A DNA stretch of 56,893 nucleotides, filler included, from Platydemus manokwari (Eukaryota): the NCBI GenBank assembly GCA_037951405.1. It is 4 parts of 4 records of this genome, joined end to end, with 100 filler letters (N's around TTAATTAATTAA, not from the genome) between each part and the next. Parts side by side here need not be neighbours in the genome. Positions count along the whole stretch, not along the records: positions 13,199 to 33,128 come from JBBMOY011689177.1; 3 more parts are not named here. One strand, written 5' to 3'. A program made the position numbers and the translations under genes. The stretch's first letter is position 1; each line of letters begins with the position of its first letter. This document shows, in pieces, positions 3,440-33,128 of the stretch. Under the pieces are notes generated by a model. That model saw only the letters and a program-made list of their open reading frames with translations, was not told the origin of the DNA and ran no database searches.

Positions 3440-6400
3440 AATTTATACAATAAATAGTTCCGTTGACAGCACTGTCTCAATAAAAAATATTGAAACAAAA
3501 CACATTTTTATGTATTGATTGATTTATGAGAAATTATTTGTTTATCGTTTTGAGCTTCTAACTTTATAGAAAGATTAAATTATGGTGACGTAAACTCCAA
3601 ACAATCCAGCCAGAGGAAGGAAAAATTGATTCGCGATTACCACAATCAAATAAATCACGTTCAGTTACATTCAGAAAAGCAGTGATCAACAATTGGTTTC
3701 GGAGCTTAATAAGAAACAATTATCGATGAATGAGTTGACAAATAGAGTTGAATAATAATCTGGAAATTATAATATGCTAACACTTCCTAATAATTATTGT
3801 CTAAACTTTATTCCTCTTTCTACTGATTTTATAGGATAATTTTTATTTTAATAATATTTTCTCATTTGTCACCTTTTAATTTATCTCACATCTTTGTATT
3901 TTATGTATTTTTATTTTTTTTTAATTATTTATGGGTTTTTTTAAAAAAATTTTCAAAATTATCAAACATGATTGTAATAGCCGTTTATGTATAACGTGAT
4001 TTTCTATTTTATTTTTAATGTTTCTTTAAATTATTCACATCACATTTTAATTATTGTTTCTTTTATTTTCTGGAAATGTTGTGTTTAGTATATTCTCAGA
4101 ATCACAAAAACTAATTTTGTTTTTTAAAATTAGTCATTTCAATTTATTTCGATTTTAAGGCCATGCTTTTGTGAAATGTCAAAAATTAACAAGGTATTGG
4201 CATTGATTTGTTTATGAATGTCCATCACTCAGTATTCAAAGCAATCTCAGGTATACAGTTTCGGGTTCTAGTTACCTGCAATATAGTGTAAACTCTCAGA
4301 ATTCTTGAGTTAAAAATATATTAACCGACTCGTGCTTTCGGTGAGACGTTAACCGGAGATAGTCGTAAATTTTTGAATATCTTAATTATTCTTTTTTGAA
4401 GGTTTCTAGTTGCGGGTAGTTAGAGATGAAACTCGAAATTTTTCTTCGATTCGTCTTTTTTAGGATGCGAATTCCATAGAAAACTGATTTAAACTTTCAC
4501 CACCTTTTTAATATGTTCGCCAAAATCGTAATAACGATTCTTGGAATTCAATGCTGTATTAATCTGATTGTGATCTTGATTTAGAAATTGATTTTCTTCG
4601 AGATTTTTCACCTGTCTTGGCCAGTCTGCTTTTGAACAAAAAATGTAACAAGATAAAGTCCACGCTAATTCTTCTACAATTTTATCTACTTTTTGTGACC
4701 TTGGGAAAGATTTTTCTGGAATAATTATATTTACCTCTCTAATGAAAGAGCATTATTATTTGCTATTCATTTTACAATATTTCGACTGTCAATTTAATAA
4801 TAAGCCTTTCTGATTCTTTTTTTTAAGTAGATAGTTGTTGCATCGTTTCCTGCTATGCAGATCTCTATGCAGAGGCTTACTTGAAAAACCAAAATCATCT
4901 GATCACCTTGTCAAAAGACTTAAATAGGAATTTGTAGTCGTGGAATTCGGATTTCATTGATTTTAGTAAATATCGAAATTTGTTACCTTCTTGTTTCCAA
5001 GTCAAACTAGCGCAAGCTCAATACCCAAAATTTAAAACAAAATTTCACATAAAACCAATAGATCGACAATGTAAATAACTTGGAGATTAAAAATCCAAAT
5101 TATTTAGAAAAATTAATATCAACAACCGAAAGATAAAAATCACCACAGGAATTAAGACATTAAAAGACTAACAGTTATCCTCGAAAGTCGACTTCTTTTA
5201 TAGATTTTTTGTGTGTTGATATGTTTTGTTAAATCTTAATTTTGCATTCGTTTGAACCATTATTACCTCATCTTTATCTTCGTTGTTTTCTTTTAGAATG
5301 TGAAAACTGATGATCGAGATGCAGTCAGACATTGAAAGTTTCAATTCATATGATTGGATACTGACATGTGTATTTATCATGGCCGCGGTAAAAATCCTTT
5401 AAAGGTTTTGTCCATTGTTTCCGTAGACATTTTTCATCGATTTTGTCACATATTCCGCAAAATGAACATTATTGAATTAAATAATAACTAAAAATTATAA
5501 AAAGTTTTATAGAAAATATTGATTGATATTGATAATAGATAGATATTTTTCTGTAATCAATAATAAAAGTATTATTACTTTTCCCTCATCAATAAATTGA
5601 TAAATTTGTGATGCAACAAGTACCTTTTGTTTTTGTGTGTGGAATTGTGAGCCTTATTGAATTACACTGTTTCCCAGGTTATTGAAGTGCCTGAGATATT
5701 TTGATTCTTTTTGAAGAGTTCTCCTTGAGTAAATGATGTTTTTCGATGTCGTTAGAAAGTTTGTTATTTTGGAATTCTCCCACTTTAAAGACACTGGCTT
5801 TCTGAGGGTGTTGGGAGAACAAACAGCTACTGCTAAGAACGACAAAGAAAGTCTGAATGACATCAATCCTCCAAGAGTCATATATATATAAAAGATAATT
5901 TAACAAAACATAATAAAGCACAAATATTGAAATCGTAGAATATCAATACAGCCGTTCTGGTAACAAAATCTATAATAAGCGATCGTATTGCTACTAAGTG
6001 GGTTTTTAAAAATTCAGTAAAATATTATTTTAAAAAACTATTAAAAATAGTTAAAGCGGTTATTACGAGCAGTGACTTGGCTTCACAAATAACGAAGTTT
6101 ATTTTCTGTCAATTCCAATGATAACTCATATTGGAACTGTAAACATGTCCTGATATCCTGATATCCCAATATATCATAAGTAATACATTAAAAAAACGAA
6201 TTACATGACATCTCTCTAAAGCTAAATTATATATTTTAAAAATCAAATTATAATATATGAGAAATGTATATTTGGTTACGGTGTTATTAACCGAGTTTAT
6301 CAGTATTGAATTAACAGCAAATCGCCTACATATTAATATTTTCTGTCAGCTAAGGACAAATTCTTACCACAATTATGATATACATAAAATAATTTACCTC

Positions 6401-13198: not shown

Positions 13199-16100
13199 TT
13201 TGTTTAAGAATAGTATAATTCTTTATATATAAATAATATCATTAATATCGTGTTAAATTTTTTATGAATGGCTTTATGTAATAAAATCATTTCCGAAGAT
13301 TGAGCACAAAACATCGTTATTTATATGATTTTAAAAATGACATTAAAATTAACATTAATAATTATTTTAGAATTGGTGAATTTCATTATAATAATAACTA
13401 ATATTAGATATTCAAATAATCTTCAGCTAATGCAGTTCATGTAATAGTAAAATTCATCATGATCGATAAAGAATTTATGTAATTTAAAAATTATATTGAT
13501 GACAGTATATGACAAATTATTTCTGTTATTTGATCTTATATTTGGCTTTTTAGAATATACCGATTAGATTATCAGAGATATTGTGCGATGTATCGCATTA
13601 TAAATTATTGAATTATTGTAAATTAATAACATATTTCTTCACTGAAGCATGAATCTGATGAAGTTAAGTGGTTTTATGTATTGAAAATTTGTCAATCTTG
13701 TTGAAGAACTGAATTGCGTGAGACCTGGCCAAACACTTTTGAGTCTCCACCATCGAATCCGGGATAGCTGTATGAAGAGTGGATACATGATTATTATACC
13801 AATGTTGTTATGGTCATGCAACCTCAATGTTAGTTGGCTTTTTACAAGTTGGCGAAAGTAAAAGAAATATCTTGAAATGCATTCTGTGTAGCTCGCAGGT
13901 TGAATGTAAAATTTGAATAATATTGCCGATTTCTCTGAATGTTTTCTCTAATCTGTTCTACTTTAAAAAATATGTTGCAAATTATTTGTGCTACAGAATT
14001 TTGTGCGATTTTTCTGCCTATTCTATAATTTAAATAATGAAACGTTTAATTTTATCAAGCGAAAGAGCAAAGACAATTTCTATCATTAATTGAAGCAAAT
14101 AACATTATTGGATGTTGATGACGTTATCAAAAATCGTGCAGTATTGTAGTTCACCCGGAATTTCTAACACGATAACCTTGTGAATTAATTAAGAAAATGA
14201 AAGGATTAAAATCACTCGCAGTAAGTGTGCAATATCCAAGGCCTTGAACTTTTCTCAATGATCGATTTTTTGGTTCAGACTCAACAATATATAAATGCAC
14301 TTTTACTCGATTATGATCAATAATATAAGTGACGATATATCGACTCGATGGCCTAGCGGGCTTATTTTCGTTAGAAATGTTTTTTGCATGATGCATAAGT
14401 CATTAAATCTACGATTTTCTATTAAAACATGGAGTATCGGTCCGTGTCACCATAGGAACAATTAAGACCGCTAACTCAATTTTCATCATTTTATCCAGAA
14501 TTGATTAGGGATTTGTAAATAATTCTGTAAATAATGGGAAATTTTCCCTTGTATTTGAGTTCATAGTTACGCTTCACACCTGTAAAAAATTATTTATGAT
14601 ATGAATACGTAGTCGGTAATATAGAAATTTTGTTACAATTTTAATGTTACTTAAAAAAAAATCTATTCTTATTTTATTTTACTCGTTCGAATTGTTTGTG
14701 ACATTGAACTCGCGATTTTGCGGGTTTTAAACCTAGGGCCACATGAATCATACTTTATACAATAAACCACTGGATTTTACGCATCTGATTTTGCTTTTTT
14801 ACTGAAAATTATCAAGTACGTCATAGTTTTCAAAGATCATTTAAAGGTAATTTCTTTCAGAAGTAAAGTTAAAATGAGCTTGGGAATAATGCAATAATTG
14901 AAACTGTTGCAAAAGGTTGGAATAATATTCTTCAATTCACTTGTAGGTGTTAACCAAGTTAATTCAATACTAGCTTTTGAAGAGCAGCGTGGAGGATGAG
15001 GTTGTCGCCAAGACCACAAAGTCAACTCCAGGACAATTTGAAACATGAAGTCATATATCGAGTCTGCTTGATATAGAATGAGCACAAGTAATGACATTTT
15101 TATAGAATTCGTCAATATCTTAACAACGAGAAAGTTTGATCGAGAATATAAGATAATTACTGAGGTATGTCTAGCACTAATGGGAAACACAACAAAAGAC
15201 CTCGAAGCCCAGACAAATTAAGAACAGGTATTTCGATCCAATTTAAATGTTGTACAAAACATAAATTTACTGATTATTTGATTTCTGTGTCTGTTTTGCT
15301 CATGTAGAACTATCGATTATCGTACAGTGTTATTTATATTAATTCTATCATAAAAGAGGAGGATATAACATTTTTATAATGAAATAGTCTCGTAATATCG
15401 AATACCGACATCAAAATGGTATAAAATCAGAATGATAAAAAATATTTGTTCATAAAAAACACAAATATTAAAAAAAATAAATGTTAAATAAGCGATAGAG
15501 AAAAGATACCAAGTATTACAAGAATAAAAATGAATAATTTCATTCAATACGACTAACCGAAATAATTATAAACAAGACAGATTTTTGAAATGTATAATAA
15601 GTATGAAAATCTTGCCACTTTCACAATTTCAGGGCAATCAATTAATTGACGAATTTTAGAATCGACAATGGAATCAGTGACAGGTAAACAAGCTACTAAA
15701 GAATCACTAGAACATTACCAAGGAATTGTTTCAGAGATATTAGGAAACATTTTGAGAGGAAATAGATGAATAAAATGAAATTTATCTGAGAATCTTGTGA
15801 GAATTTGAGAACTATTTGAAAAATATTTGATGGTATTGTTTATTAGTTGATTGTCGCTCAAAGAATCATGCTTTGAGCATTTGTGTTTTTATATATGAGA
15901 TCTTGCGTTTACTTCAAGATTGTGTCTTCATTTTTATATTAAAGCCATTCTGTTAGTAAATATTATTTTAAAATTTTGCCGTAATCAGGAAGTGGATAAT
16001 TTATTATTATGGATTTACAAGGACATTAGAGACTGATAAGAAGGAAATTTTAACATTTGATAAACTGCCAAGGTGAACAAAAGCTTGGATATAATCTCTA

Positions 16101-16545
16101 AATTATAATCTATTAACACACTTTTAATCCAGCACTAGATAAAAATGGTTATGGTTTTATTCATTTTTTCTGATCATTTTGGATGGATTATGGTGGGGTT
16201 ACTTGATAGAAGCCTATCAAATTTTTAAAAAAGCGAAATTTAAACTTTTATTAGCGGTGTTAAGTAGGCATCGATATTAACGACATTTTATTTGAGGTGA
16301 TATTAATCTTGTGATATGCACTAAGGTATTTAAATATTATTATTTAATAGCTAACGTTGCTATAATTCTGGTTACGATCACTAGTACATGTATCGTTATG
16401 TAAATATATACACGGTGTGAAAATTGGGTTTATATTAAGAAGTCAGCACATGAACGAGTGACATAAATTCAATACAAATATGGTAATTTAATATAAACAT
16501 AAAACGCACATTAAAAAGGATTTTCAAAATTAATACCTGTACTTA

Positions 16546-18120
16546 ATGATCCAATCTTTTTTTAATTCTAAATTCTATCCATATGGGTGCCTGGTTGCTC
16601 TGGTGCTTTTAGGGATTTCGATGGTGAATTGATTTTTTGGAAATTATTTGTATTTCAACTTTACAGGGAATATGGCAAGAAAGCATTTATTCAACCTTGC
16701 CAAATTTGAAAGAGAAATTAAATGTAAGTTACGAAACCATGGGGAAATTAATAGCTGTTCGGAACTCAGGTAGTGTGGTGGCATTATTGATTATAGGATT
16801 TCTGTATGATACATTTCCAATATATGTTCCTTACATGATGTTTGGTGAATGTTTTTTGGCTGGAATCTGCACGATAATTATTCCTTGGTGTACTAAATTT
16901 TGGATTGTGGCACTTTTTTTCTTTATCCAATCAGGATCGCAAAATGCACTGAATAATGGTGAGGATTAATATCATTGTATTAATATTGATCATTTTTTCA
17001 CTTTGCCTTAGAGTTATGGATAAATACTCAAAATTTTTATAAGAATATTTTTAGACAATATTGTTTTCTGTTATCAAATATTTATCTTTATTAAATTACT
17101 TTTCATTTAGGGGGTCAATTGACCATTATGAACTTATTTAAAGAAAAATCAGTGGGTAAGATGCAATTATATCATCTCGGATACGGAATAGGAGGACTTC
17201 TTTCTGGATTCATTTGTCAGCCATTCCTTCCGAATAAACCATCTTCTTCAGGCAAAATCACGAAATATTGCAAAACGATTCTCGAAAGTCAAAGTAATAA
17301 AGCTGCAGAACTCAATTACATCGGTAATGTCACAACATTAGAAATAGTCGATAAAAGCATGTTCGAATATATTTATCTCATATCTGGACTCATTAGTATT
17401 ACCAACTCAATAATATTTGTAATTTTCGTGAGTTTCAGAAATCCCATGTCTTCGCAGAACAAAATTAAACAAAAGAAAGAATCATGGTTGACGAAAATTC
17501 AACCTAATTATATAGCAAATGGTAAAACCCTTATTGGTGTTTCTATGACAATTTTATTATTTATATATTATTTTTTCTACATTTTTGGATTGATGCAATT
17601 TTTTTCCTACCTTATCGTTTACGCTATCGATCCGTGCAAAGAATACTGGATGGATCAAAAAACTGCCGTGTATCTTTTTTCGGTTACAAATGGGTGTTTC
17701 CTTTTAGGAAGAATTTTTGGCAGCTTAATTATTGATTTACATCCTACTCTTATTATTTTGCTATTTAATTCGTTGAATATTATATTTGTTCTTGTGCTGT
17801 TATTTTTCAGTAACAAATACTCGCTAGCATTATGGATTGGTGCATGTGGAATGAGATTTTGTAACTCTATCGTATATCCATCTGGAACGAGTTATACTAA
17901 TCGTTATATAATTGTCACAAGTAGTTTGATATCTATCGCCTTCATTGGTGCAAATGTAGGAGAAGTTCTCGGACCGTTAATTGGGGGTTTAGTAGTGGAT
18001 AATTATCCATCATATTACCTATTTTATCATACTATAACCTTTTTTACCTTGTTCTTGATCGTTATAATAATTATAGTTATTTTGGGGATGAAGATAGGAT
18101 TAAGAAAATTTGGAAATTAG
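16546..18120 (+). CDS. Major facilitator superfamily transporter, MFSD4/NaGLT1-like, 459 aa, 3 exons
   Basis: Exons 16546-16623 (MIQSFFNSKFYPYGCLVALVLLGISM), 16667-16958 and 17111-18120. GT-AG introns of 43 and 152 nt with matching phases; 1380 nt total. Motifs STLPNLKEKL, GFLYD, MQLYHLGYGIGGLLS, FLLGRIFG, SIVYPSG, LGPLIGG and about 12 hydrophobic segments. TATAAA at 16492; AATAAA at ~18183. Confidence 0.88.
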
Positions 18121-20649
18121 ATGACACTGTCAACTGATTCAAAAATTGAACTTCGGAAATTATAATTGATTGTAATAGCATAAATAAACATTGATTCTGA
18201 TTTTCTTATTGTGTTAAAAGTAAATCGAATTGAAAAGTAAACATCGATAAACATTTCAAAGCCACTTTGCTTATGATGTCTAATTTCATATTGAAATTCT
18301 TAAAACTATCTTGATTATAAAGCCCACCTCAAGGTATATTTTATATGGATTGACTGCTGAGAAAGTTCAATAAACTGAAACTATTGAAAAAAATAATACA
18401 AGAATAATGAATTACTCACTGTGAGTTGACGAATGAAGTTTAATAAAAATGTGTTATGATTTGGTATTGAAATCTGCGATAAATTAAAGTGGCCCACCTA
18501 TTAATTTCTTACAACATTAAAATTAAAAGCGCCACGGGAAACTTTTTTTCTAGCCTTATAAGAAAATCTATTTGTTTCACATGAGTGTTTATCCTTTAAG
18601 TAGTTGATATACCTTGGCCTTAAGGTTTTTATATTTTCACTCTATGGTGGAATATTTGAATTGGTGATAATTCTCTCATCTTTACCAGATTGTTTGAGTT
18701 CTTTTTGAAGGCCACATGAGTATTATTTCTGATTTTGTTCTTTTTTTGGGATCTCAGTCGTCAATAATGTTGAGATTATGAAAGTGGCAAGAGTAGTGTT
18801 ACCTATGTAAATGTCAAAGTTGGCCTCATTTTATTATTAATAATTTCATGCTTGATTGATACAACTTTATCAAATCTTAGTTGGGGTTTCTAAAAATAAG
18901 ATTTTATAAACATTTTTGAATGATTTTTAGTGATTCAATGTATAAAAGTATTTATCACTGTATATCAGCAGTGAATAATTTATATTAAGTGTCTGTAAAA
19001 AACTGTAAGATGATTGTTTGGAATATTAATTTTTTATTCGCATTTTCTTCAACGGGCAACTATTCCGAAATCCGATGTTGAAAATAATAATTTCCAAATA
19101 GTTTAGATAGAAATTAGTGAATAAGAATAATGATAGTTTTAGTTGATAATAATTATGATTTTAATGATAAATTTAAATATTTAAGTAAATGGTAATATAT
19201 TATGTCATTGAATTAAAATTAAAATTAACTTGGATAAAATAAGTTTAATAACAATTAAACTTATGATTCGATTGGCTACTAAAAATATAACAATGAAATA
19301 AAATTAAAGCCATTATCCCGAAAATAATAGGAAGAATTAGACTAGCATGACAACCCGATAGGGATACTTTCTTTTTAAAATGAAAAAATCAACAACAATA
19401 AACATTGTAACCCATTATTTTCCTTCGCTCGGTAACCCACTATATAAAGCACTTAACAAACAATGCCTTTACCCTTTAATTAGAAACCACTAAACCCTTA
19501 AGTTATTCCAGAAGACAGAATATTCGGTTTCGCCGAGCCAAGTCAATGTTTCAATCAAGTCAAGCAGTTTTAAATTCCATGTAATTGCTCAAGGAGAGAA
19601 TAGAAATATTTCGAGTAAAGATCAAAGCAATATAGTTCTTGTAAAATTTTATATAAGCCATATTCTTTTTAATTAAAGTTGAAATTCCTTGAAATAGACA
19701 CCTCCTCAATATCGATGAAAAGGCTTGTTTGGTGTACGCTATTTTACCCTGAATTGCAGATTTATTTCCAACGGTTTTAGTACATAGTGCAATATCAAAA
19801 CTCTAATTATATAAAAGTATTGAGTTTTGCATATTTGATATTTATAATACACATATTTAAGTACTCAGAAAGAATTTTAGTTGTTTTAATCAAATATTAT
19901 GTATAGGAGTTTTAAAATATACTCAAAATTAATTATTTGAAAACCGGTCAAAGTAGGTAAAAATGAAATTAATTGAAAATTAGCTAGGATCTCTTCTTTA
20001 ACATTAGACGCAAATGGAACGATATCTGATTTTTAGAGTTGTTTATAAAAAAGTGTTGAAATTGCTAGGAGGATTGCTAGGAGCTAGATACTTGTGTTTT
20101 ATCTCAAAATAAGTATATTAATATCTATTTAATATATTGAACGGAAAGATCCAAAACCTGTCGATACTATAATGGAATAAAGATTAAATAGAAATTTTAA
20201 ATTTAAAATGATACTTTTATTTAATTGTAGGTTTGTGAAACAATGATTTCCTATTAAATCTAAAAATTTCATTAAAATATGATTACAAAATATGATTACT
20301 CACGAAAAATCATTTCATTAAAATTGGGTCGAAGGATTCTTTTCCTTAACCTAAGTCAAAATACTATCAACCCTTATTAATTCAAACTTCAATAATCTGA
20401 AAGCTTTATAGTCCAAAAAAATATTTATTTCGTCAATTTTCGAACATTTTCAGACAAATTTGATCCATAAATCCGAAACTTTATGATGCGCAATCGGAAA
20501 GTTCTTTTTTGAATTAAATTTATAATAATTCTGAAGTTTCGGATGTTGTTTAAATAATAAGTTTGTTTACAATTTTAATTTATTTATTTTAATATATTTT
20601 CAATTTTTACAATTATTATATAAAACTAACTAGTGTACTAAATATGTGT

Positions 20650-20895
20650 AATTAACTAACTCGATTTATAATTATAAAAATTTAAATTTAAAAACTCAAA
20701 TAATCATAAAGAAATGTTGTGATTAGAACTTGGGAACTTGGTTTTAAAACTAAAATATAAGATATTAACTGATTTGTACGAATAAAGCAAACATAGCAGT
20801 TATATATATAAAATTAAGTTATAAAATCATGTCATGCGCGAAAATCCATTATAACAAAAGTAGGTCAAAGGACCCATTTTATTAACTTAAGCCAA
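20650..20895. repeat. Dispersed repeat family A, copy 2
   Basis: Colinear high similarity to 3171-3439. Confidence 0.8.
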
Positions 20896-20919
20896 ATATC
20901 CATATACCTAGAAAAAGAA

Positions 20920-22150
20920 CAGAAATTTACTACTCATCCATCTCGAATGAATTCGATAAATGGTTACGTGATGAAATATCATTATCATTACAAAACCATG
21001 GGCATTTGGACCAAAACTAAAGGTTGATGACCTGCAATTCAACAGAGGATGGCTCTATAGATTCAAAAATCGATTTAATCTGAAATTGAATGTTCTCCAT
21101 GGATAAACAAATTCAATGAATGATGTTGATGTTTCAGGCTATAGAAAAAAAATGTTTGAAAACTTGGTAGGAAATGACCCAGAAGTTATACACAATATAT
21201 ATGAAACTAGACATTTTTTCAAGCATTTTCTACAAGAACAATTTTATAAAATGAAATGAAAGGCTCAAAACAATTTAAAATTAGAATAACCATAGCTTTA
21301 TGTTCAAATATTAGTGGATCAATTAAAATGACCCCCTTTGTTATTAGATTTAGCAAGAAACCAAGATGTTTTAAAGTATTTAATGTTTCAAGATACTGTA
21401 TTACCACGCAAATTCGAATGCATGGATGACCACTGATTTGTTTAATTGTTTTCTGCTGCATCTTGATGATGAACTGCGAAAATGCAAAAAAAAATATCTT
21501 CTTGATACTGCTCTAAGTCATATCTTGAAGAAACGTTTTCAGGACACTGAAGTTATAATGATTACAAAGAACTCAACTACTCATCTTCAATCCATGGTTG
21601 CAGGTGTAATACAAAATTTATTATTATTACAGAAAAGGTTAGTAGTTCATTACATGAACTCGCTTGATCAAACAAAAGCCTTTGTTGTTAATCTTAAGAA
21701 AGCTATATTGATACTTCACGAAGATTATTAAGATATAAAAGAAAAACCCATCAAAAATTATTTCAAAAAGGTTGCGATTATTAAAGGTCTTCACGGTTCT
21801 TGAGACACACAAGAATGAACCTGACCATATAATGATTGAAGAGGATATTTACCAAACAGAAGAGGTCATTCATGATGATGAAATCATTGAACTGTGTCAA
21901 GAAGAATACACTATTGAAGATGTTGTACTTAGTGTTGAAGATGATCAGGTCAATGACAGTTACAACATAAGTCCAAGCAATTTATTCCAGGCAATTGAAA
22001 TTGTCATCAAAGCAAGTTCTTCGTCAAACAGCTCTACTTAAAATATAACCAATAATACAATAAAAAATTTAAAAGACCTCAAAGTTTATTTACAGAAATT
22101 TATTCAAAAGAAAACTCTATAAAAAACTTAAGACGATTTTTTAAATAAAT
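20920..22150 (+). mobile_element. Decayed Tigger/pogo (TIGD-like, DDE_1) transposase pseudogene
   Basis: Frameshifted or stop-interrupted motifs in the expected order: IHNIYETRHFFQ (N-x-DETGLF), GSKQFKIRITIALCSNISGSIKMTPFVIRFSKKPRCFK, NSNAWMTTDLF...LLDTALSH, KNSTTHLQSMVAGVIQN (NTTS-LQP-D-GVI), acidic TEEVIHDDEIIEL tail and KTLDDFLNK end. TIRs not found. Confidence 0.85.
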
Positions 22151-23829
22151 AATTGTCTTTTTCATAATAATATCATCATTGATATGGCGATCAGTTAGAT
22201 TTTAAATTCCTTCAGGAAGTTATTCTAAAATTCAAATCCATTATTCATTTGATACATTTTGATGTTGACCATGATTTGACACATGTCGCATTACATACAA
22301 CTTTAGACTCTGACATTATTGTCAGAGACTTTAAAAAAAGTCTTAATGGAATCTTGGACTTGAAAATATCTTATGACTTGGTAGAAAATTTTTAGAGGAA
22401 TTGTTCCAATAACTGAGATAATCATACACACTTGCCGATACGACTTTTACCTTAACTTCATAAATCTTGGTATTCTTGGTTCCTGGAAGCCTCAAAAGGT
22501 TTTCAATATTTTAGGCTTCGATAAAAAGATTATATATATACTTCCTGTGAATAAAAAAGTGATCCGGTCCGCCCCTAATACCTATTTGAGTAACATTTGC
22601 AGTGATAACACAATAAAATAAGTAACAACTGCATCTTTATCTCTCTCTTCTAAACTATCATCAACAAAACTAATTGACCCAAAATAATTATATCGTCTTG
22701 GAAAAAGCCTACTTGATTTACTTCTTTAATATATAAATAAGTAGAAGGGACTACTTTCTCCAGATAAATTTTATCAGTTATTGGGCATTCACATTTGTTA
22801 ATATAAAATCAGAAATATTTATTTTATTTTCAATTAAATGAGTAAAGCCTTACTATTATCAAATCCTAATAGTGATCCTAAAGTAATGAATTTTATATTT
22901 TTCCTTCCGTATTTAGTTTTCATTTTAAGATTCATAATAGAGTTTCCAGAATCTTGTCTAATAGTTATATCTTTATCAAAATAATCTCATTCATTGGATA
23001 TTTGTGTTATTCTTTCTTTTGATAATCTTTTTTTAAATCCGTGACAAATGATTTGATATTCTTCTTGATAAACAGTTTTTGAAAATATTATTAAATTGTC
23101 ATTGGCTAAAGATGTTGATATTAATAAGTAGTACGCCAAAATGAAGACAAAACCAGATTACAACTCGAATCTGCCAGTTGGTGAATCGTGGTATCATCAA
23201 TTAAAAGTCCTGACTGGTTCTGGTGACTAAAAATGAATGTCAAACCAGTTTATCGATTTGCAATTTTCATCAGCTTAGTAAAAAACAATTCTTTTATAAT
23301 AAAAATACTCATTTAAAATCATTTTAATTTTTAATGAATCTATTTTGAAACGATGATACATTCAAAATATCATACTCATTTTCATTTTTTATAAATTGTT
23401 TACAATCTAATTACTTAAGGTAAAATGAATGAAGGAATAGAAAAGATAAATCGAACTTAATGATACATAGTTTTAATGAGAAATTTAAACAGTTATGTCG
23501 ATGTTAATTACTAAAATAATGTTATTCTAATGACTTGTTATGGGGTTGCTTGCTAATTTTTATTATCAGTCTCTATATACTATGTTTTATTGTGGATCAA
23601 TGCCGTTCTGACAAGTCTCTGTGAGCTCCGATCAACCCCTTAAGGTACACTCTATAAACCCTATTTTATAATCTTCTATCTTCATCTCGCTATCAATACT
23701 ATATGGAGATAGTAAGCAGCAATGATCCAAATGCTATATTTTATAACTATCAGTCTCAAATTTTAATGTCCTATACCTATATCCTATCTAATCAACAACT
23801 CAACAAACAATTGATACAGTAGTGTTTAT

Positions 23830-24260
23830 TAATTACGAAATATACACCAAACATAAAATTATAGTCAAATTGTTTGGTTAAAACTACACTATACGACGAA
23901 ATAATGAACCTAGACGATAACACCTACAACTTCTGGAAAAGAACGGTTTCTAACTTTAACTCAAGAAGTAGAACCTTTACCCATAAGAGTTTATGGTGAG
24001 ATAAAGCTCTATAATTTGATGATACGACGGTACAATATATAATATCGATTATCAGTTTACAGTATCAATCGAACTCACTTAATATCCTGACAAGAACACA
24101 ATCAATATAATTACTTTGAACAAAAATCAAAAGGCATATATCGGTAGGCTTCTATGGCAAATATGTATCCTTATCTTCAAGTATTCTTCTTAATGTTAAA
24201 TTGACTTCACGTAATTCAACATAATGGTTTCTGTAAAATGACCGAGTTGTGATTATTTCA
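23830..24260. repeat. Diverged dispersed repeat family C, copy 1 (other copy ~31780-32200)
   Basis: Shared colinear blocks: taaaactacact, acaact.ctgga.aa.ga.acggtt..taac.t..actc, aacc..ttacc, aagag.tt, tacaatatataatat. Boundaries approximate. Confidence 0.5.
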
Positions 24261-26146
24261 ACTCCTATATATATGTTTTGTCGGCGCTATTTAATCTCCC
24301 CGAATAAAATAATTGGGTACAATTTTTAGAAAAATGCTTCCTCTTTAATTCATGAAGTTTCTTTAATTTTTTCCGAAGTTATCTTTGTTGCCATTATATT
24401 AATCAGTTTATATATAAAATACATTTTATTTTAAATAAATACCGTAATAAAATATTACATAATAATACATATATATTTTCCAGAAATGTAGGATTTTAAC
24501 ATGACATTAAAATTATTGTTACAACATAAAAATATATAGCTACAATGCCATAAACTAAACAAAATAGTTGCTTCGTGCAATAACAACTAAATGTTTCAAT
24601 TTTCAGCTCTTCATAAAAATTAAATTTCGTCACAATCGTAACAATTTTCACCAGCTGAAACTTAATTAAATAAATTTTAATTACAACACAATAATAAAAT
24701 TATAAATTACTACACATAGAATACTTTAATACACAGAATAAACAAAATATTGTCATAATTACACAGGATATTTGTCACATTTGTCAGCACATCTACAAGA
24801 ACCCCAACAATAAAACCATTTCTAGATATTTACATACAACGAAAACAATTGCGAGTCAATGTTATTCAAATCTAGGCATCTCATTTAATAAATATTATCT
24901 TATTAATTTTAATTAACTCAAGTACTTACCTCTAATATTGATGATTTTATTTAATTTTTGGATCAATATTTCCTAACTTACATATAGATTTGCTTAAATT
25001 CAAAATTTATGATAAACGTTAATGATATTTTCAAGGCATTAAATGAAAACTCAAATCTAAATTTCAAAGATGGTTAGATAGGATTATTGAATTAATATCA
25101 CTGAACAATGAAATAATTTAAAGGTTTAAAGAGAAGGATATATGGTTTCTTCCATACAACGAAATTTCGAAATTTAAACAAATACCGACATATTGAATAA
25201 TGATTACGATATGAAATCTACAACTGAAGATATTCTTGATGTAGTGATTAAAATAAGATGATGAGTCATTCAATAACTTTTCAATCGACTACTGGAATAC
25301 TGCTGGTAAAAATATATATTTATTATTTCAAAGTTTAAAACTGAGATTTATGTTTTATTGAAGACCACATTTAAAATTTATCTAAAATTTAATGTAATGA
25401 TCAAAGTTTGAATCTGTCGAACTGTTATTTATCTGAACAGAGTTTTATTCTTAACCTGAGTTGATATGATAGTTATTTAGACTATATTATGATTGTTGAA
25501 AAGGTAAATAAGATAATTGCTGTGTAAATTTTTTATTTTTTTTAAAGATAAGATATATCAAAACCATAAAAGAACAATACAACAATAAGTTCAATGTCCG
25601 ATGCTTCATTTAAGTGACTTATTGGAAGTTCAAGCAGATGGAAAAGATAAGTAAATTTATGATTAAAATATGATGGCTTGAATTTGAAAAATAATTTTCA
25701 AATTTGTCGTCATGAGAATTGAATTAATTTATGAAAAAATACTTATACAAAAAACGTAAATTACCTTTACTATTCTGCAATCAGGTAATTTTATTTTAAG
25801 AATAATTTAAGAAAAATTTTATAATTGGTAAAACCGAAGAACAAATCACCACATTGATTCCATTGCGTATATATTTTCTCTATTAATATATATACGTGTG
25901 TGTGTGTGCAAACCATTATATTAATAATTATGTATGTGTAGAAATGTGTTGCTATTTCATTACGATTTCGAAGATATATATTGAGGAGCATACGAATCAG
26001 TTTATTTATAGCATCAAAAAGAAACCTTATTCATTTCTTTGTAAACCTACTAATAATCTAATGACTAGAAATGTTATTTATCAAAAACAGTAATGTCATA
26101 TCAATAAATATCAAATAGAGACAAAACTCAATTTATTGAATTTTCA

Positions 26147-29100
26147 TTAATTCATTTGTTTTTTACAAATGAATTGTTGACGTATTCCACAGTTCGTAAA
26201 TTTTGTAATAAATCCGTTATTGTCTTTTCGAACATAAGAACAGAAGTGAAACGGTCGTAAAACTGAAGGGCGTATCCTAATCAAATAAAATAAAACTAGA
26301 ATTAATGCAAATCTAATTTACCTAGAATTAAGCCTGATTAAAGATTTCGCATCAATACCATTAAGTAAATTTATAGCACTACCAAGTAAACTTAATGTTT
26401 TCCCAATTTTGTATTTCGATCCACTAATAATGTTCAATCTTCCACCTAAACGTTTTGTTACTTCACCGACAATATAAGATGCTTTATTGACATGTGCTGA
26501 GAATTGTACATTTATAGCTCTTTTCATTCGGAAATTTTTCTTTTCCCACATTTTAGTTCCTGAATTATATGTGTATCCGCTTTTAATGAGCTTATTCATT
26601 TTAGAAAACGTATCAAATGTTTGTACAAACCAATTTATGAAAGCCGTGTCAATTTTATCAAACTGATTATTATCTACTGCTGTTATTATCATTTGGATAT
26701 TATCCTTTATATTTTGACGACTTCCTTCATCGATGTATTGTAAAAGATTTGTCCACTGATAATGTTTCAATAATTTAACTTTTTGTTTAAATTCTGCTTT
26801 TGTCTTTACATCGAAGTTGGTATTGGAAATTTCATTTCCACTACTTTCTACAACGCGCTTTTCCCATATTTTCGTTTCAAGATTGTACTTGTAACCGTTC
26901 TTAATAAAGCCATTTATTTTAGATAATGTTGTGAATGTTTGCATAAACCAATTAAGGTAAGTCATATCAATTTTATCAAACTGATTATTATCTACTGCTG
27001 TTATTATCATTTGTAAATTATCTTTTATATTTTGACGACTTTTTACATCAATATACTGCAAGAAATTTTTCCATTGATAAACTTTCAACAATTTAATTTT
27101 TTCTTTTAATTCTGATTTTGTCTTTGTATCGAAATTGGTTATGATATTTCTAGTTCCACCGGTTTTCACAACATGCTTTTCCCATACTTTTGTTTGGGAA
27201 TTAAATTTGTAGCCTTTTTTAATGAAGCCATTTATTTTTGAGAGATTATCAAATACTTGTAGAAACCAATTATAACTTCCTTTATCCAGTTCGTCAAATT
27301 GCTTATCATCAACAAATCTTACTATTTCTTTTATTTGTTGTCTTAATTGTTGCCGAATATTTTCTCCGATATACATCATTAAAGTTTCCCATTGAAATTG
27401 TTTTAATAGTTTCACTTTTTCTATCAAAGTAGATAATAATTTTCCATCTAATGCGTTTAATTTCTTAATTTTTAAATTTTCTTTATTAATCAAATCGATA
27501 ATATTTTGTATTTCATAAACCCAATCGAATTCAATGACGATTGGTTTACCATTTGATTTTGACATTACTTTTCTAATTCTTTCAATCCACAAGCTTTGAT
27601 CGATTCCGGATACTCGTTTGATAAGTTCAACCCAATTACTTGGAAGACTAAATTGCAATGAATTAATAATTTCTGTTGATGTTTGGGGAACGTTAGCAAT
27701 CTTTAATTTTTGTAAGTTGAAAATAATATCATTTAACCATTTCAAATAATCTAAATTAATTTTATCATACTTTTTAGTTTCAACAAAACCAATAAATTCT
27801 TTTATCTTTTTCATCATCACAGCTCTCTTAGTTTCATCTATATATTTAGCAAGTGCATTCCAATTAATTTGTTTCAAAAGATTTCTGTATTGCAATGATA
27901 ATTTCACTAAAATATCTTTGTTGCTATTATTTGGTAATTTTGGAGGGGCCTTTATATTAGCAAGTCTCTTGAAATTTCGAAGAACTTTCTTAATAAATTT
28001 TAAAAGTGGAATATCCAAATTTTTGATATCTTGTTTTTTAACCAAATTAATATATTTCTGGATTTTCTCTGAGACTTCAACTCTTGAAGTAGAATGAAAA
28101 TATTTAAGAAATTGAACCCATTTCATTTGTTCCAAAAGTTTGACAATGTGAACATATTCCTTAAGTAGACCACCATTATTCTTCGATTGATAACCAGAAA
28201 CATTCCCTTTCTCTTTATCTGTAATTGCTGGCAATTTACTTTGGACTGTTTTCACTACTAGTTGAACAAAATTCATTAAATCAGGAGTAATTTTATCAAA
28301 TTGTTTGCTAGTAATGAAAGAAATAATTGTTTTGATTTTATTCGTAACTTCGAGTCTTTTATGTTGTGGGAATTGATGAGTAATTTTGTCGATTGGTATT
28401 TTCATCAAATAATCAATAATCGTTGGATTTGGAAGTTTATATTTAACTTTGTCAATGGTAGCAGTGATAAATTTGATTAGATCAGGAGTAATTTGATGGT
28501 ATTGTTTTATTGTCATCAAATGAATAATGGATTTGAATTTTTGAATAACTTGTTGTCTATTAGGTTGTGGTATATGCTTGAGTATATTTTCCAGAGGCAT
28601 AATTTTCAAAAATTCGACAATATTGATAATTCGAGGTAATTCCTTATTACCTTTTGGCAATGATTTATTATCCACTGGCAATTTACTTTGAACCGTTTTC
28701 ACTACTAGTTGAACAAAATTCATTAAATCAGGAGTAATTTTATCAAATTGTTTGCTAGTAATGAAAGAAATNNNNNNNNNNNNNNNNNNNNNNNNNNNNN
28801 NNNNNNNNNNNNNNNNNNNNNNNNNNNNNNNNNNNNNNNNNNNNNNNNNNNNNNNNNNNNNNNNNNNNNNNAAATTCGACAATATTGATAATTCGAGGTA
28901 ATTCCTTATTACCTTTTGGCAATGATTTATTATCCACTGGCAATTTACGTTGAACCGTTTTCATTACTATTTGGATTTTTTCAATTAAATTTATTATAAA
29001 TTGAAGTAATTCTTTATTTATTTTGTTGAATTCGTTTTTCTGAATAAAATTTTCTAATAATTTGACTTTTTCTATTGTTTTTGGTCTGTTATTTGGTTCA

Positions 29101-30936
29101 ATTATTTGAAGTAGATTTTCCCAGTTGATTCTTTGTAGAACATGTTTTATTCGATTAAATTTTTCGGCTTCTTCATCTTCTTCAATGTCAGCAATATCAC
29201 AATCGCATGTTTGTCTAATTTTGATTTTTCTTAAATAACGAATTATTTCATGCATAATCTCTAATAAATCCAAACTAATTTTCTTCACATCTCTCATCTT
29301 TACAACTTTTATAAAATATTTAATTTTATCAATAATTTCTGGTCGAATTTGTCCATGAAAATCTGTTATTAGTGATTCCCAATTCAAAGTTTCTATTAAT
29401 TTTACGAATTTGAAACTGGTATCTAGAATGACTTTTTCTTTTTCGACATTTGTTTTTTTCTTATATGTTAGCCGTATTCTCAATTTTCCCAATGATGTAA
29501 TTATTTCATTTATTGAATTAATGAGTTCAATGTTAATCTTTTCAAATTCTTTGTTACGAATCCTATTAATAAATAACCGGATTTGTCCAGAAATTTCTCT
29601 TTTTTTACTTTCTTCTATGTTGATTATAATGTCTTCCCATTTCAAATGTTCTAATAATGAAAGATATTTATTAGCAGTATCCTTTATTAATTGTGCTCTA
29701 TTTCTGTCTACTCCCTGATCAAAGATAATTCTTATTTTAATTTTTAATATTTTTTTAATTATATCACTGAAAAATTCAATCAAATTTCTATCAATTTTAT
29801 CTACTTGATTTTTTCGTATAAAATTAATAAACATCTTTATTTTTGTTATAATTTCCACACTTCGTGCTTCATCGTAACGTTTAACTAAATCTTCCCAATT
29901 AATTTCTTCAAAAAATCGAATACATTTCAACACGTTTTCTATTGTTAATTTTTGCTTTGCGACATCTTTTTTAACATTTACGTAATATTTGATTTTGAAA
30001 GTTATTAATTTCGATACGATTTTAGTGATGAATTCAATTGTATCACTATAAAGATTATCAACGTTTTTCCCTTTCACTAATCTAATAAATGTATTGATTT
30101 TTTCCAAAATATCTGGTTGTTTACATTTGTCGAAATAGTTGAGAAATTCATCCCAATTTGTACTTTCAAGTATATCAGAATATTTCGATAAAATTTGTAA
30201 AATTATTTTTTTCATTTTTTCATTTTTGATATCACTGATTTTTATTAATTTTCGTTGTGTATGTGATTTCAATTTGATTCGGAACTTTTTTGGTAATCTA
30301 AAACACAAAGATCATATTTCTTCAATTATATTTATCATTATAAAATTTGTTGTTGATAATTTTTACCGTATATTTTCATATTTATTATTAGTGGTTAATT
30401 TTAATTAAATTTTTACTTTCTTAACTTAAATTTAATTATTCTTTTAGCTGATTAAAAGTAATAAATATGTTTCACCTTCCAAAGTGTCCCCCACTGTAAT
30501 CGACCATCCAATATCTATTTTTCGTTATTTTATTAGCCACTGGTTTCAAAACAGTCTGTAATTAAAATTAAAATTCATTAAAAAAACATTTCTTTACGAG
30601 ATCAATCTAACCATATCGTTATCGCTAAATGGAGCTGAATTTTGTTGTTGAGTTTTTTGTTGACAAATGACTTGAGCATCTTCATAAGTTGATTTGAATT
30701 TCGACACATAGTAACACGCTTGGTTTGGCACACAAATTGTTTCTAAATAAAAAATAAAATTAATTATTGTCTAATATTAATATATTAATGTTTCTATTTC
30801 TCATACCAAATTCATTTTCTTTACCGTCGGCATGAATGGCCATACCTACAGAAATTAAATGAATCGTCGAAAACATTAGCAATGAAACAATAGTCTTACA
30901 TATAATTGTAAATGACAATAATGTTATTGCTAACAT
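26147..30936 (-). CDS. Large secreted protein (>=~1,525 aa): signal peptide + N-half of C-type lectin-like domain + >=13 helical repeats + RMKR site + C-half of C-type lectin-like domain
   Basis: Exons (minus): 30936-30900 MLAITLLSFTII; 30845-30807 CMAIHADGKENEF; 30742-30612 ETICVPNQACYYVSKFKSTYEDAQVICQQ...; 30555-30476 TVLKPVANKITKNRYWMVDYSGGHFGR; 30297-26322 (giant exon, ORFs 28755..30308 and 26318..28882 joined across the N gap); 26276-26147 RIRPSVLRPFHFCSYVRKDNNGFITKFTNCGIRQQFICKKQMN*. All five introns are GT-AG with matching phases. AATAAA at 26137-26132. Confidence 0.85.
28772..28871. other. 100-N assembly gap inside a collapsed 447-nt coding tandem repeat
   Basis: Both flanks match internal parts of the 447-nt unit (gtaatgaaagaaat at 28311 and 28758; the VDNKSLPKGNKELPRIINIVEF block on both sides). 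No TTAA linker. Confidence 0.85.
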
Positions 30937-30973
30937 TTCTTATCGCAATTATTTTCCTCAACATCTTCGAAGC

Positions 30974-30981
30974 TATTTATA
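30974..30981 (-). promoter_or_regulatory. TATA box of the split-lectin repeat gene
   Basis: TATAAATA on the minus strand, 38 nt upstream of the ATG at 30936. Confidence 0.55.
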
Positions 30982-31779
30982 CGAATTGAATAAAGTAAAG
31001 GATTCCAAAATATAAATCTCAAGAGTCAAAATCCAATAATCAACTCAAAATAAGTGTTTTTATTAAATCGTGGTACGGTTTAAGATTTTGAAAATCTCGG
31101 AAACAATTCCTACTTTTAGACTCTTGATTTTACAAATTTCAATCAACTTATAAAATAACCCTATCACTGATATATAACACTTGTGTTTTGAAATGTATAT
31201 TTGAAGTTTTTCGTATATGCTATATGCAATTGAAAATTTCGATCGTATTGATTCAATATTATATTAAAATTAGTCGTCGTCTCAAGTTCGAAAGGTTTAG
31301 AAAAATGGGTGGAATTATTCATAAATTAATTAAGTGATTTTCGTATTTTAAATTGGTATAAATCTTTACTAATAATATTGGACATTATTTATCTTTATTT
31401 TTGGAAGTTATAATTTATATATGCTGTAATTTGATGTTTCTTTTTTTGAACATTATCTATTTATCTATAACTTACGTACATATTAAAAGATTTAGAAAGA
31501 TTTTCTAACCAAATTAATTAAACTATTTCTTCGTAATTTTGGATAATGATCGTGGTCAAATTGATTATAAAGACAATAGAAATATTATTTATTGTTTATG
31601 TTTTGAAGAAATTAATATCAGTATAAGAATAAGTGTAGTAGTGGTGATATATTTTAATTAACTTAGTTATGAGTCTCAAGTTATTTAAACAATGAGCTAT
31701 GTTTATAACAATGGATATGAATAATGACTTTATGATCCCTATATGATTGAGAACTATAGCTTGCTAATACAAATATTTA

Positions 31780-32200
31780 TTAACAATTAACAACAATACA
31801 AAACTGATAAACAATAATAACATAAAAATTACAAATTTTAAAACTACACTTTACATCAACTTATGCATATAACAAAGCCTAACAACTCCTGGACAAAGAG
31901 ACGGTTGATAACCTGCACTCTTGGAGCAAAACCGATTACCTTTCAAGAGCTTTGAGCAACAAACTCGATAATAGAAAATAAAGCAATACAATATATAATA
32001 TGAATCAGTATTTTACGCAAATGGATCTTACTTTTGGGTTTTCCAATAAGATACTGGGTATATAAAAATACCATCCTTCTGCACTGAATGGTCTTCTATT
32101 GTGCGCTGGTCAAATTGTGAAATAATGTTTTCTTCTGTAAAAGATAATTGGTTGACACGTAACGGCAACTTCGTATAATTGTGGTTGTGGAATAATAGTA
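31780..32200. repeat. Diverged dispersed repeat family C, copy 2
   Basis: Same orientation and colinear blocks as 23830-24260. Confidence 0.5.
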
Positions 32201-32414
32201 GTGAAATTATGGCTTAATTAATTGCGACTGCTGTCTTGTATAGGCAGTGTGAATCACTCGCAGATATTCTCTGCCATTAAACCTAATTCCAGCGAATTTA
32301 TTATTTTATCGATAGAATTTATTCACTGGTGAGAAAAATTCTCTTAGAATAAATTTATTTCACTAAGAAAGTATCTCTCGATTAAATTTAATCTAGTGGT
32401 TATTGTATTCTGTA

Positions 32415-32485
32415 ATAATAGATGACAAATTTGTCGATGTTATAGCGCGATAATAGATGACAAAATTTGTCGATGTTATAGCGCG
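32415..32485. repeat. Near-perfect 35/36-nt tandem duplication
   Basis: ataatagatgacaaa(a)tttgtcgatgttatagcgcg x2, head to tail. Confidence 0.95.
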
Positions 32486-33128
32486 ATATCTTATTATTTT
32501 AGGGAATTTCGACGGATATGCTCTTGGTGATTTTACTGATATTATTATTTTACGTATATATAAATAATAATTAATATAAGAACCAATATTTTAGGCTGGT
32601 TTTTGCTCAAAAATTCCAAAAGAACCCCAACAATATTATTAATTTATATTGAACGGTTGTTTAGGATTTGGGAATCTGAATTTAAACGATAAATGAGAAT
32701 TTATATTCGAATTTGAAGTTTTTGTTTATACTAATGTAATATTTATTTTGACCTACTTACACCAGCTTTTGGACTATTTTTACTGACTCTTCAATAAATA
32801 AATTTAAAAAGGTGACTGAAGAAAAACAATATTCCAAAATTTTATTAAACCAAAGTATCGGTGAATTTTCTAAAACCATTATTAAAACCTGTAATTCAAA
32901 ATAATAATAAGCAAACATTAGCAATAGCAGACGAAAATAAAAATTTAAAAGCTATTGAAAATAAATAGTAAATGCAAATATTGAATATATATTGAACAAA
33001 AAACAGATAAAATTAATAAAGAAATAAGAATAAAATCCTGAAAATTTCGTATAAAAATAAATATAAATATAAAATTAAATTAAAAAAGAAGATATTTGTA
33101 AAAGTTTTTTGGGATATTTAATTAAAAT

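Follow-up and report, generated by a model that had tools for sequence, protein, structure and literature searches.

The window analyzed here is a stretch of 56,893 nucleotides (nt) from the Platydemus manokwari assembly GCA_037951405.1, in which four parts of four records are joined end to end with 100 filler letters between them. Positions 13199-33128 come from contig C1689177 (JBBMOY011689177.1), one of about 2 million in a very fragmented, AT-rich assembly of 911 Mb, and our subject is a gene on the minus strand of this contig. It comprises six exons between 30936 and 26147 (Table 1); every intron is GT..AG, and the reading frames join in silico. The two ends of the conceptual product resemble the two halves of a C-type lectin-like domain (CTLD), and a single giant exon between them encodes a long array of helical repeats. 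The product reads as 571 residues, then an assembly gap, then 859 residues, with one stop codon at the end. It is basic, with lysine making up 13.8% of residues and an isoelectric point of 9.8. The only strongly hydrophobic 19-mer in the protein is N-terminal (MLAITLLSFTIICMAI), and there is no membrane segment. This hydrophobic segment is likely a signal peptide and the protein is predicted to be secreted, as the initial annotation of this stretch had proposed. The sequence strings quoted in that annotation are all present where it placed them, and its exon structure holds, with six exons that join in frame in a layout that recurs on other contigs.

The giant exon has no conserved ATG, and conservation begins exactly at its acceptor with the motif (K/R)F(R/N)I(K/R)L(K/R). 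This motif lies at 30276-30296 on the minus strand of the window, alternates basic and hydrophobic residues, and is kept at the start of the giant exon across paralogs, with a similar motif at the very end of the exon in some of them. The beta2-beta3 hairpin of the CTLD might be lengthened by strands formed from the start and end motifs, paired with each other. X1, the one public run that contains the locus, is a genomic run with contigs that cross introns 3, 4 and 5 without splice joints, and support for the gene model is therefore comparative. With the layout read from several loci, as described below, we consider it very likely that the six-exon gene is real. As a separate observation, each of the introns flanking the giant exon carries a tandem repeat of period 26 in about two copies (26278-26331 and 30395-30444), and the two consensus sequences are unrelated.

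Table 1. The split gene and its features in the window (positions count along the whole window).
Feature	Position	Strand	Description
TATAAA box	30976..30981	-	45 nt upstream of the ATG; sequence match only
Exon 1	30900..30936	-	ATG and hydrophobic start of the predicted signal peptide (MLAITLLSFTII); same start in paralogs
Exon 2	30807..30845	-	End of the predicted signal peptide and short spacer
Exon 3	30612..30742	-	CTLD-like beta0/beta1/alpha1; invariant C0, C0' and C1 (C-x5-CYYVS...TYEDAQVIC)
Exon 4	30476..30555	-	CTLD-like alpha2 and beta2 (RYWMVD, W invariant); ends AG|gt, phase 2
Giant exon (3,976 nt)	26322..30297	-	Helical-repeat insert; phase 2 at both ends; 1,292 codons read, plus gap
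Five type-A repeats	28989..30173	-	52-residue core, 86-residue period, all-helical
CxC motif (CDC)	29199..29207	-	Separates repeats 4 and 5; kept in five paralogs
Collapsed tandem unit, 447 nt (149 residues)	28248..28948	-	One full copy (28248-28694), two 77-nt partials, N gap
'LPSNW...GID..LW' unit	27452..27658	-	Single-copy; also in P0001, P0002 and other paralogs
Three type-B repeats	26537..27409	-	Period about 106 residues; each ends in an NGY.YN..TK.WEK beta hairpin
RMKR	26519..26530	-	Candidate proprotein-convertase site; only R-x-K/R-R of the giant exon
Variable basic tail	26324..26518	-	65 residues between the cleavage motif and the C half
Last exon	26147..26276	-	CTLD-like beta3-beta5; invariant C2, C3 and C4 (FCSYV...TNCGIRQQFICKK); stop codon included
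AATAAA	26132..26137	-	Starts 10 nt past the stop; sequence match only

Comparison of the end modules with the PDB points to CTLDs from several directions. With a profile of exon 3 alone, 32 of the 37 matches were CTLD chains, at beta1/alpha1 and with a best E-value of 0.011; they include CD69, CLEC2D, CD209, CD94, SP-D and the CTLDs of snake venoms (snaclecs). The top three matches of a profile of the last exon alone were CTLD C-termini, those of PLA2R, REG4 and bitiscetin (E 0.008 to 0.46). When the halves of the window gene were joined, all seven matches were CTLDs, the best being agglucetin alpha-1 (E 0.0041), where query residues 7-110 run along residues 12-129 of 131 in a single alignment. 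The joined halves of a divergent paralog on contig C426666 gave CTLDs in 10 of 10 matches, led by CD72 (E 0.067), with query 6-106 aligned end to end to 13-116. All 17 matches for the joined halves of these two paralogs are therefore CTLDs, at E-values that are weak even for the best of each set. Language-model neighbors of each half also include Lectin_C clusters, with weak scores that serve as leads only.

The conserved residues follow the same pattern. Each half carries three invariant cysteines, six in total (nine N halves and nine C halves compared), and in the alignments with agglucetin and CD72 they fall on the cysteines of the CTLD. W16 of exon 4, the WIGL-strand tryptophan, does not vary, and the alpha1 motif (W/Y)xxAxxxC is present in all paralogs as TYEDAQVIC or NWETAQQMC. 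The family shares with canonical CTLDs (PF00059; agglucetin, bitiscetin, CD72, CLEC9A, CD69, REG4) the order and spacing of C0, C0', C1, C2, C3 and C4, the alpha1 (W/Y)-x-x-A-x-x-x-C, the WIGL-strand tryptophan, the C-terminal 'FICK' strand and a phase-2 intron before the last exon. Ten terminal exons of ordinary CTLD genes in this genome were checked, and all ten follow a phase-2 intron placed 13-15 residues ahead of C2; in the split family the intron is likewise of phase 2 and lies 11 residues ahead of C2. In all ten of these ordinary exons (L077-L086) the intron falls just before '(R/K)NW..EPN'. The ordinary CTLD family of the genome is large, with at least 148 Lectin_C matches, and the phase-2 intron looks conserved there.

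Unlike canonical CTLDs, the split family has no long loop, no EPN/QPD and no WND, its domain is interrupted by at least 1,300 residues, and it is blank in Pfam. In an alignment with CLEC9A, 'RYWMVDYSGGHFGR' stands opposite 'DYWVGLSQDGHSGRW' and 'yw..gh gr' is aligned up to the insertion point; therefore, the insert follows immediately on the WIGL strand, beta2, where the long loop would start, which is the position first assigned to it. The initial annotation had also noted the missing sugar-binding motifs, and we find neither EPN/QPD nor WND in the end modules, where 'KFTN' occupies the place of WND; EPN is present in the genome's ordinary CTLDs. Calcium-dependent sugar binding is therefore not expected. 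Together, these several weak but agreeing lines make CTLD ancestry of the end modules quite probable, and the claim that both ends are CTLD-like stands on the 17 concordant PDB matches and the invariant cysteines and tryptophan, each match being weak individually.

The insert itself consists of repeats that belong to a new sequence family. Iterating a hidden Markov model (HMM) brought the count to 71 repeats across eight giant-exon open reading frames (ORFs), with at least 12 in each complete ORF. The first four type-A repeats keep a strict register of 86 residues in all paralogs, and an AlphaFold2 (AF2) model of these four in the window gene (29244-30173) is all-helical, with a predicted local distance difference test score (pLDDT) of 83.8 and a predicted template modeling score of 0.52. 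After the CxC motif the repeat run is variable, and in the window gene it includes an expanded proline-rich unit of 149 residues. Giant exons across the family carry two to four type-B repeats, which AF2 models as helices with a beta hairpin, and end in a tail of 34-95 residues; the modeled tail has a pLDDT below 50. Neither 24 repeats nor long pieces of the insert matched Pfam. A Foldseek search of the PDB with the four-repeat model found nothing at E<=0.001, and the atlas search peaked at a TM-score of 0.34. With VIA-align the top Z was 7.5, to generic four-helix bundles, which is below the meaningful level for helical proteins. Since Pfam is blank and the only neighbors are generic bundles, we describe the repeat family as new in sequence and as an ordinary helical bundle in architecture. 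Two other candidates were set aside. A DUF4042 match on P0001 (E 5e-12) was read as summed composition bias, as no single stretch passes alone, and the alternating 'KIKIRI' linkers are not beta strands in the AF2 models, which place them inside long helices.

The length of the array in the window gene is probably understated by the assembly. The gap at 28772-28871 is 100 N, a placeholder length that, as written, puts its two sides one base out of frame. The sequence on its two sides belongs to the 447-nt unit: 28695-28771 corresponds to positions 1-77 of the unit, and 28872-28948 to positions 363-439. Each side breaks off at a codon boundary and the minimum loss is exactly 95 codons of the unit, so the true gap is 285+447n nt and the frame is kept at any copy number. 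Depth in the run X1 contigs is 245 over the 447-nt unit against about 24 on either side, which suggests about 10 tandem copies that were collapsed by the assembler; elsewhere in the assembly no place is more than 77% identical to the unit. Judging from this read depth, the insert may be about 2,600 residues long instead of about 1,300. The closest paralog, on C295225, with 95% protein identity in exon 3, likewise contains a gap of 100 N, at about 3600-3730, within near-identical type-B repeats, and collapse of repeats therefore seems to affect this gene family in general.

We searched the genome with the 43 residues of exon 3 and the 42 residues of the last exon and found 10 and 11 places, respectively. 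Repeat sequence lies upstream of all 11 C halves, and a giant exon follows six of the N halves. Wherever a contig is long enough, the order of the parts is constant, namely the signal-peptide exon, exon 3, exon 4, one open exon of 900-1,500 codons, and the C-half exon. This order was read at C295225, C426666, C1117441 (two genes in tandem), C674430, C835757, C1300139 and C1284761, and intron positions and phases are identical where they were read (C295225, C426666, both genes of C1117441, C674430 and C946640). Among the genome places matched by exon 3 or the last exon, none is a paralog lacking the insert. The small exons are under purifying selection: across paralogs, median dN/dS (nonsynonymous over synonymous substitution rates) is lowest in exon 3, at 0.22, followed by the last exon (0.38) and exon 4 (0.64), at a dS of about 1 where synonymous sites are saturated. 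The window gene belongs to a lineage-restricted family of at least 10 genes for large, basic, predicted-secreted proteins with arrays of 1,000 to 2,700 residues.

Relatives outside this genome are few. The repeat profile matched just three proteins among 1.84 billion cluster representatives, and searches for homologous proteins with pieces of 816 and 277 residues found no match. The UniParc fragment P0002 holds repeats, RKRR, a tail and a C half in one chain; as it is just 48-51% identical to its best match in this genome, it comes from another species. P0003, which matched the repeat profile, is a low-complexity repeat protein and was not counted as kin. Within the genome, two family genes on C1117441 lie in tandem about 3.4 kb apart, and the giant exon of gene 2 is complete at 967 codons, for a predicted product of about 1,100 residues. 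A decayed copy on C1586322 (1-1874) is 90% identical to the tail and last exon of the window gene and adjoins a transposon-like ORF; it has two stops within the last exon, and its donor is lost.

A conserved basic motif stands at the end of the array. The pattern R-x-K/R-R is the consensus for furin-type convertases, and it occurs right after the last repeat in eight of the eight tails checked, once per giant exon. The motif reads RMKR in the window gene and in the decayed copy on C1586322, RKKR in C426666 and in both genes of C1117441, RIKR in C1665325, RRKR in C1300139 and RKRR in P0002. In the window gene it stands where the confident AF2 model ends, at the start of the region with a pLDDT below 50. 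From the motif, we infer cleavage by a convertase at this position. As there is a single conserved site, nothing would be excised, and a cut there would open any loop closed by paired halves; in the window gene it would expose AINVQF as a new N terminus. After such a cut, the N half with the array and the tail with the C half would stay joined only if the halves were paired and disulfide-bonded.

The number of cysteines bears on whether they are. Each half has an odd number, three, and a disulfide across halves is therefore required, as in the canonical C1-C4 bond. In model numbering, the predicted bond would join Cys52 and Cys1425. The pairing was also modeled in a fold test in which exon 3, exon 4 and the last exon were given to ESMFold2 as three separate chains, with no alignments. 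The score was 0.46, compared with 0.01 for the best control (0.45 above the controls), which the tool grades as weak support; the runs share at least 86% of contacts, and the partner pLDDT is at least 63. In calibration, 51 of 78 solved complexes passed the mark, as did 2 of 108 mismatched pairs. Among those passing at <=0.60 were only 5 of the 78 solved complexes and all 4 passing mismatches (of 180). One of our chains, at under 30 residues, is shorter than any in the calibration set.

On balance, we hypothesize that the gene probably encodes a secreted precursor in which the CTLD halves pair, a C1-C4 disulfide locks them, and a convertase cuts behind the array. In an ancestral CTLD gene, the stretch between beta2 and beta3, normally the long loop used for sugar and calcium binding, would have been replaced by one giant exon of phase 2 at both ends, encoding the new helical-bundle repeat at least 12 times over, each copy about 86 to 106 residues long. 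The CTLD would be reduced to a compact non-lectin core. The N and C halves would pair in the endoplasmic reticulum, where the disulfide lock would tie the array to a small domain, and a furin-type convertase would then cut at the single conserved R-x-K/R-R just past the last repeat. The end product would be two disulfide-linked chains, one of the N half and the array and the other of the tail and the C half. We speculate that its role is structural and extracellular-matrix-like, not that of an enzyme or sugar receptor, because tandem units expand and collapse fast; secretion, basic charge, membership in a multigene family and the missing sugar-binding residues are consistent with such a role.

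Several observations weigh against this hypothesis. The initial annotation had set a full-length Pfam Lectin_C match on the joined halves as its test, and neither the exon pieces nor the joined 113 residues gave a match at E<=10. An HMM built from nine ordinary CTLDs of the genome gave the joined halves 5.4 bits, below the maximum of 6.5 among 1,000 shuffles. Aligned by hhalign against 29 ordinary CTLDs of the genome, the halves fell in the right register only at low stringency (P=0.03) and were misaligned in global mode. Each CTLD match is weak singly, and the case is the agreement among matches. Because the Pfam model failed and the lectin loop is lacking, we file the end modules as a CTLD-like non-lectin core and not as a C-type lectin. 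Run X1, the only run with the locus, is genomic and covers the introns. The three-chain fold test counts as weak support, and the divergent paralog on C1284761 has just KR at the cleavage position. Finally, with 13 to 25 helical bundles the rod may be so long that a single chain could not bring its two ends together.

The alternative that survives best, which we regard as unlikely but worth weighing, is that the halves pair between molecules, the C half of each protein being completed by the N half of another. The cross-half disulfide would then produce covalent head-to-tail chains or rings, and a secreted fibre or gel whose network is modulated by cleavage and by the CxC motif. The three invariant cysteines per half fit this, as a disulfide must leave each half, and nothing in the long succession of helical bundles suggests that the ends of the array meet. 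A conserved CxC is typical of intermolecular bonds, and a fold test with three separate chains does not distinguish the intrachain from the interchain case. There is, however, no direct pointer to polymers, and when a large insert splits a domain, the pieces usually come together in the same chain, as in the split PH domain of PLC-gamma. Somewhat less likely again is a fuller version, in which the split CTLD serves as a self-complementing, disulfide-locked connector that joins arrays head to tail, building covalent fibres or networks outside the cell, with convertase cleavage and CxC setting the topology.

The ends could also be CTLD relics that no longer form one domain, acting as separate cysteine-bearing caps (for example, for docking or for disulfides to other proteins) on an array that is the functional part. 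Pfam does not recognize the joined halves, about half of a normal CTLD is missing, and exon 4 is weakly constrained, at the dN/dS of 0.64 given above. We nevertheless consider this improbable, as the residues that stay invariant are exactly those that build the CTLD core (C1, C4, C2, C3 and the WIGL tryptophan), the joined halves align with whole CTLDs end to end, and the fold test exceeds its controls. Least likely of all is a wrong or incomplete gene model, with the giant ORF a nested or separate gene or a usually skipped cassette exon and the main product a compact CTLD-like protein of 113 residues; the equal phase at both ends of the giant exon, which lets skipping keep the frame, and the stop met at once on read-through of either donor would allow it, but the giant exon has no conserved ATG or signal peptide of its own, conservation starts exactly at its acceptor, the parts are colinear at every locus long enough, no insert-free paralog was found in the genome, and P0002 joins repeats to a C half.

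The proposed architecture has partial parallels in known systems. Compact CTLDs keep the core fold with a short beta2-beta3 connection instead of the long loop, and the insertion point here corresponds to that tolerant hairpin. Zelensky and Gready reportedly described such compact CTLDs without a long loop in 2005, among them the Link module, endostatin and intimin/invasin. These have a short turn where the split family has a giant array, and no sequence relation was seen. In split PH domains (PLC-gamma, syntrophin), a small domain in two distant pieces refolds around an inserted module. They differ from the split CTLD in having another fold, a cytosolic location, no disulfide lock and inserts of hundreds, not thousands, of residues. 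For the array, the best neighbors of the four-repeat model are the four-helix bundles of alpha-catenin and the vinculin head (Foldseek) and of alpha-catenin and talin R3/R7R8 (VIA-align, Z 6.0 to 6.7, below the meaningful level); unlike these, the repeats show no sequence relation to talin, alpha-catenin or vinculin, and the protein is basic and predicted to be extracellular. Proinsulin is a convertase-processed, two-chain secreted protein held by disulfides. Judging from the motif alone, the N- and C-terminal parts of the split protein would likewise stay disulfide-linked after a cut at the basic site, but here there is one conserved site only and nothing would be excised.

CTLDs are among the most studied extracellular domains, and we know of none in which the long loop is replaced by a module of a thousand residues. 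A full-text literature search found no split CTLD and no CTLD with a nested module, and the predicted arrangement of a CTLD-like domain around a giant helical-repeat array is not known to have been described previously. If the halves refold, the protein would stand at the extreme of natural discontinuous domains locked by a disulfide, and the beta2-beta3 hairpin of the CTLD core could carry almost any cargo, which would be useful for protein engineering. If the halves pair between chains instead, this would be a new way to polymerize a secreted protein. A giant exon of equal phase at both ends may have come to occupy the domain by way of an intron that ordinary CTLD genes already have, and skipping of that exon would yield an in-frame, compact CTLD-like isoform of 113 residues. 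The new helical repeat family, with almost no relatives among the 1.84 billion protein clusters, is defined here. Beyond what was first annotated, the analysis adds the multigene family, the R-x-K/R-R site, the conserved CxC, the same-phase giant exon and the gap that hides a collapsed tandem array. The locus is also a warning for annotation, as pipelines based on ORFs or Pfam see an orphan giant ORF and miss both lectin halves.

The only other clear gene of the contig lies on the plus strand and encodes an MFS_1 transporter in two exons, 16637-16969 and 17119-18120. In the atlas it lies closest to clusters of animal 'sodium-dependent glucose transporter 1'/MFSD4-like proteins. An ORF at 21426-21731, also on the plus strand, has a weak match to the DDE_1 transposase (E 0.0024, under the Pfam cut-off) and is probably a decayed pogo/Tigger-type element.

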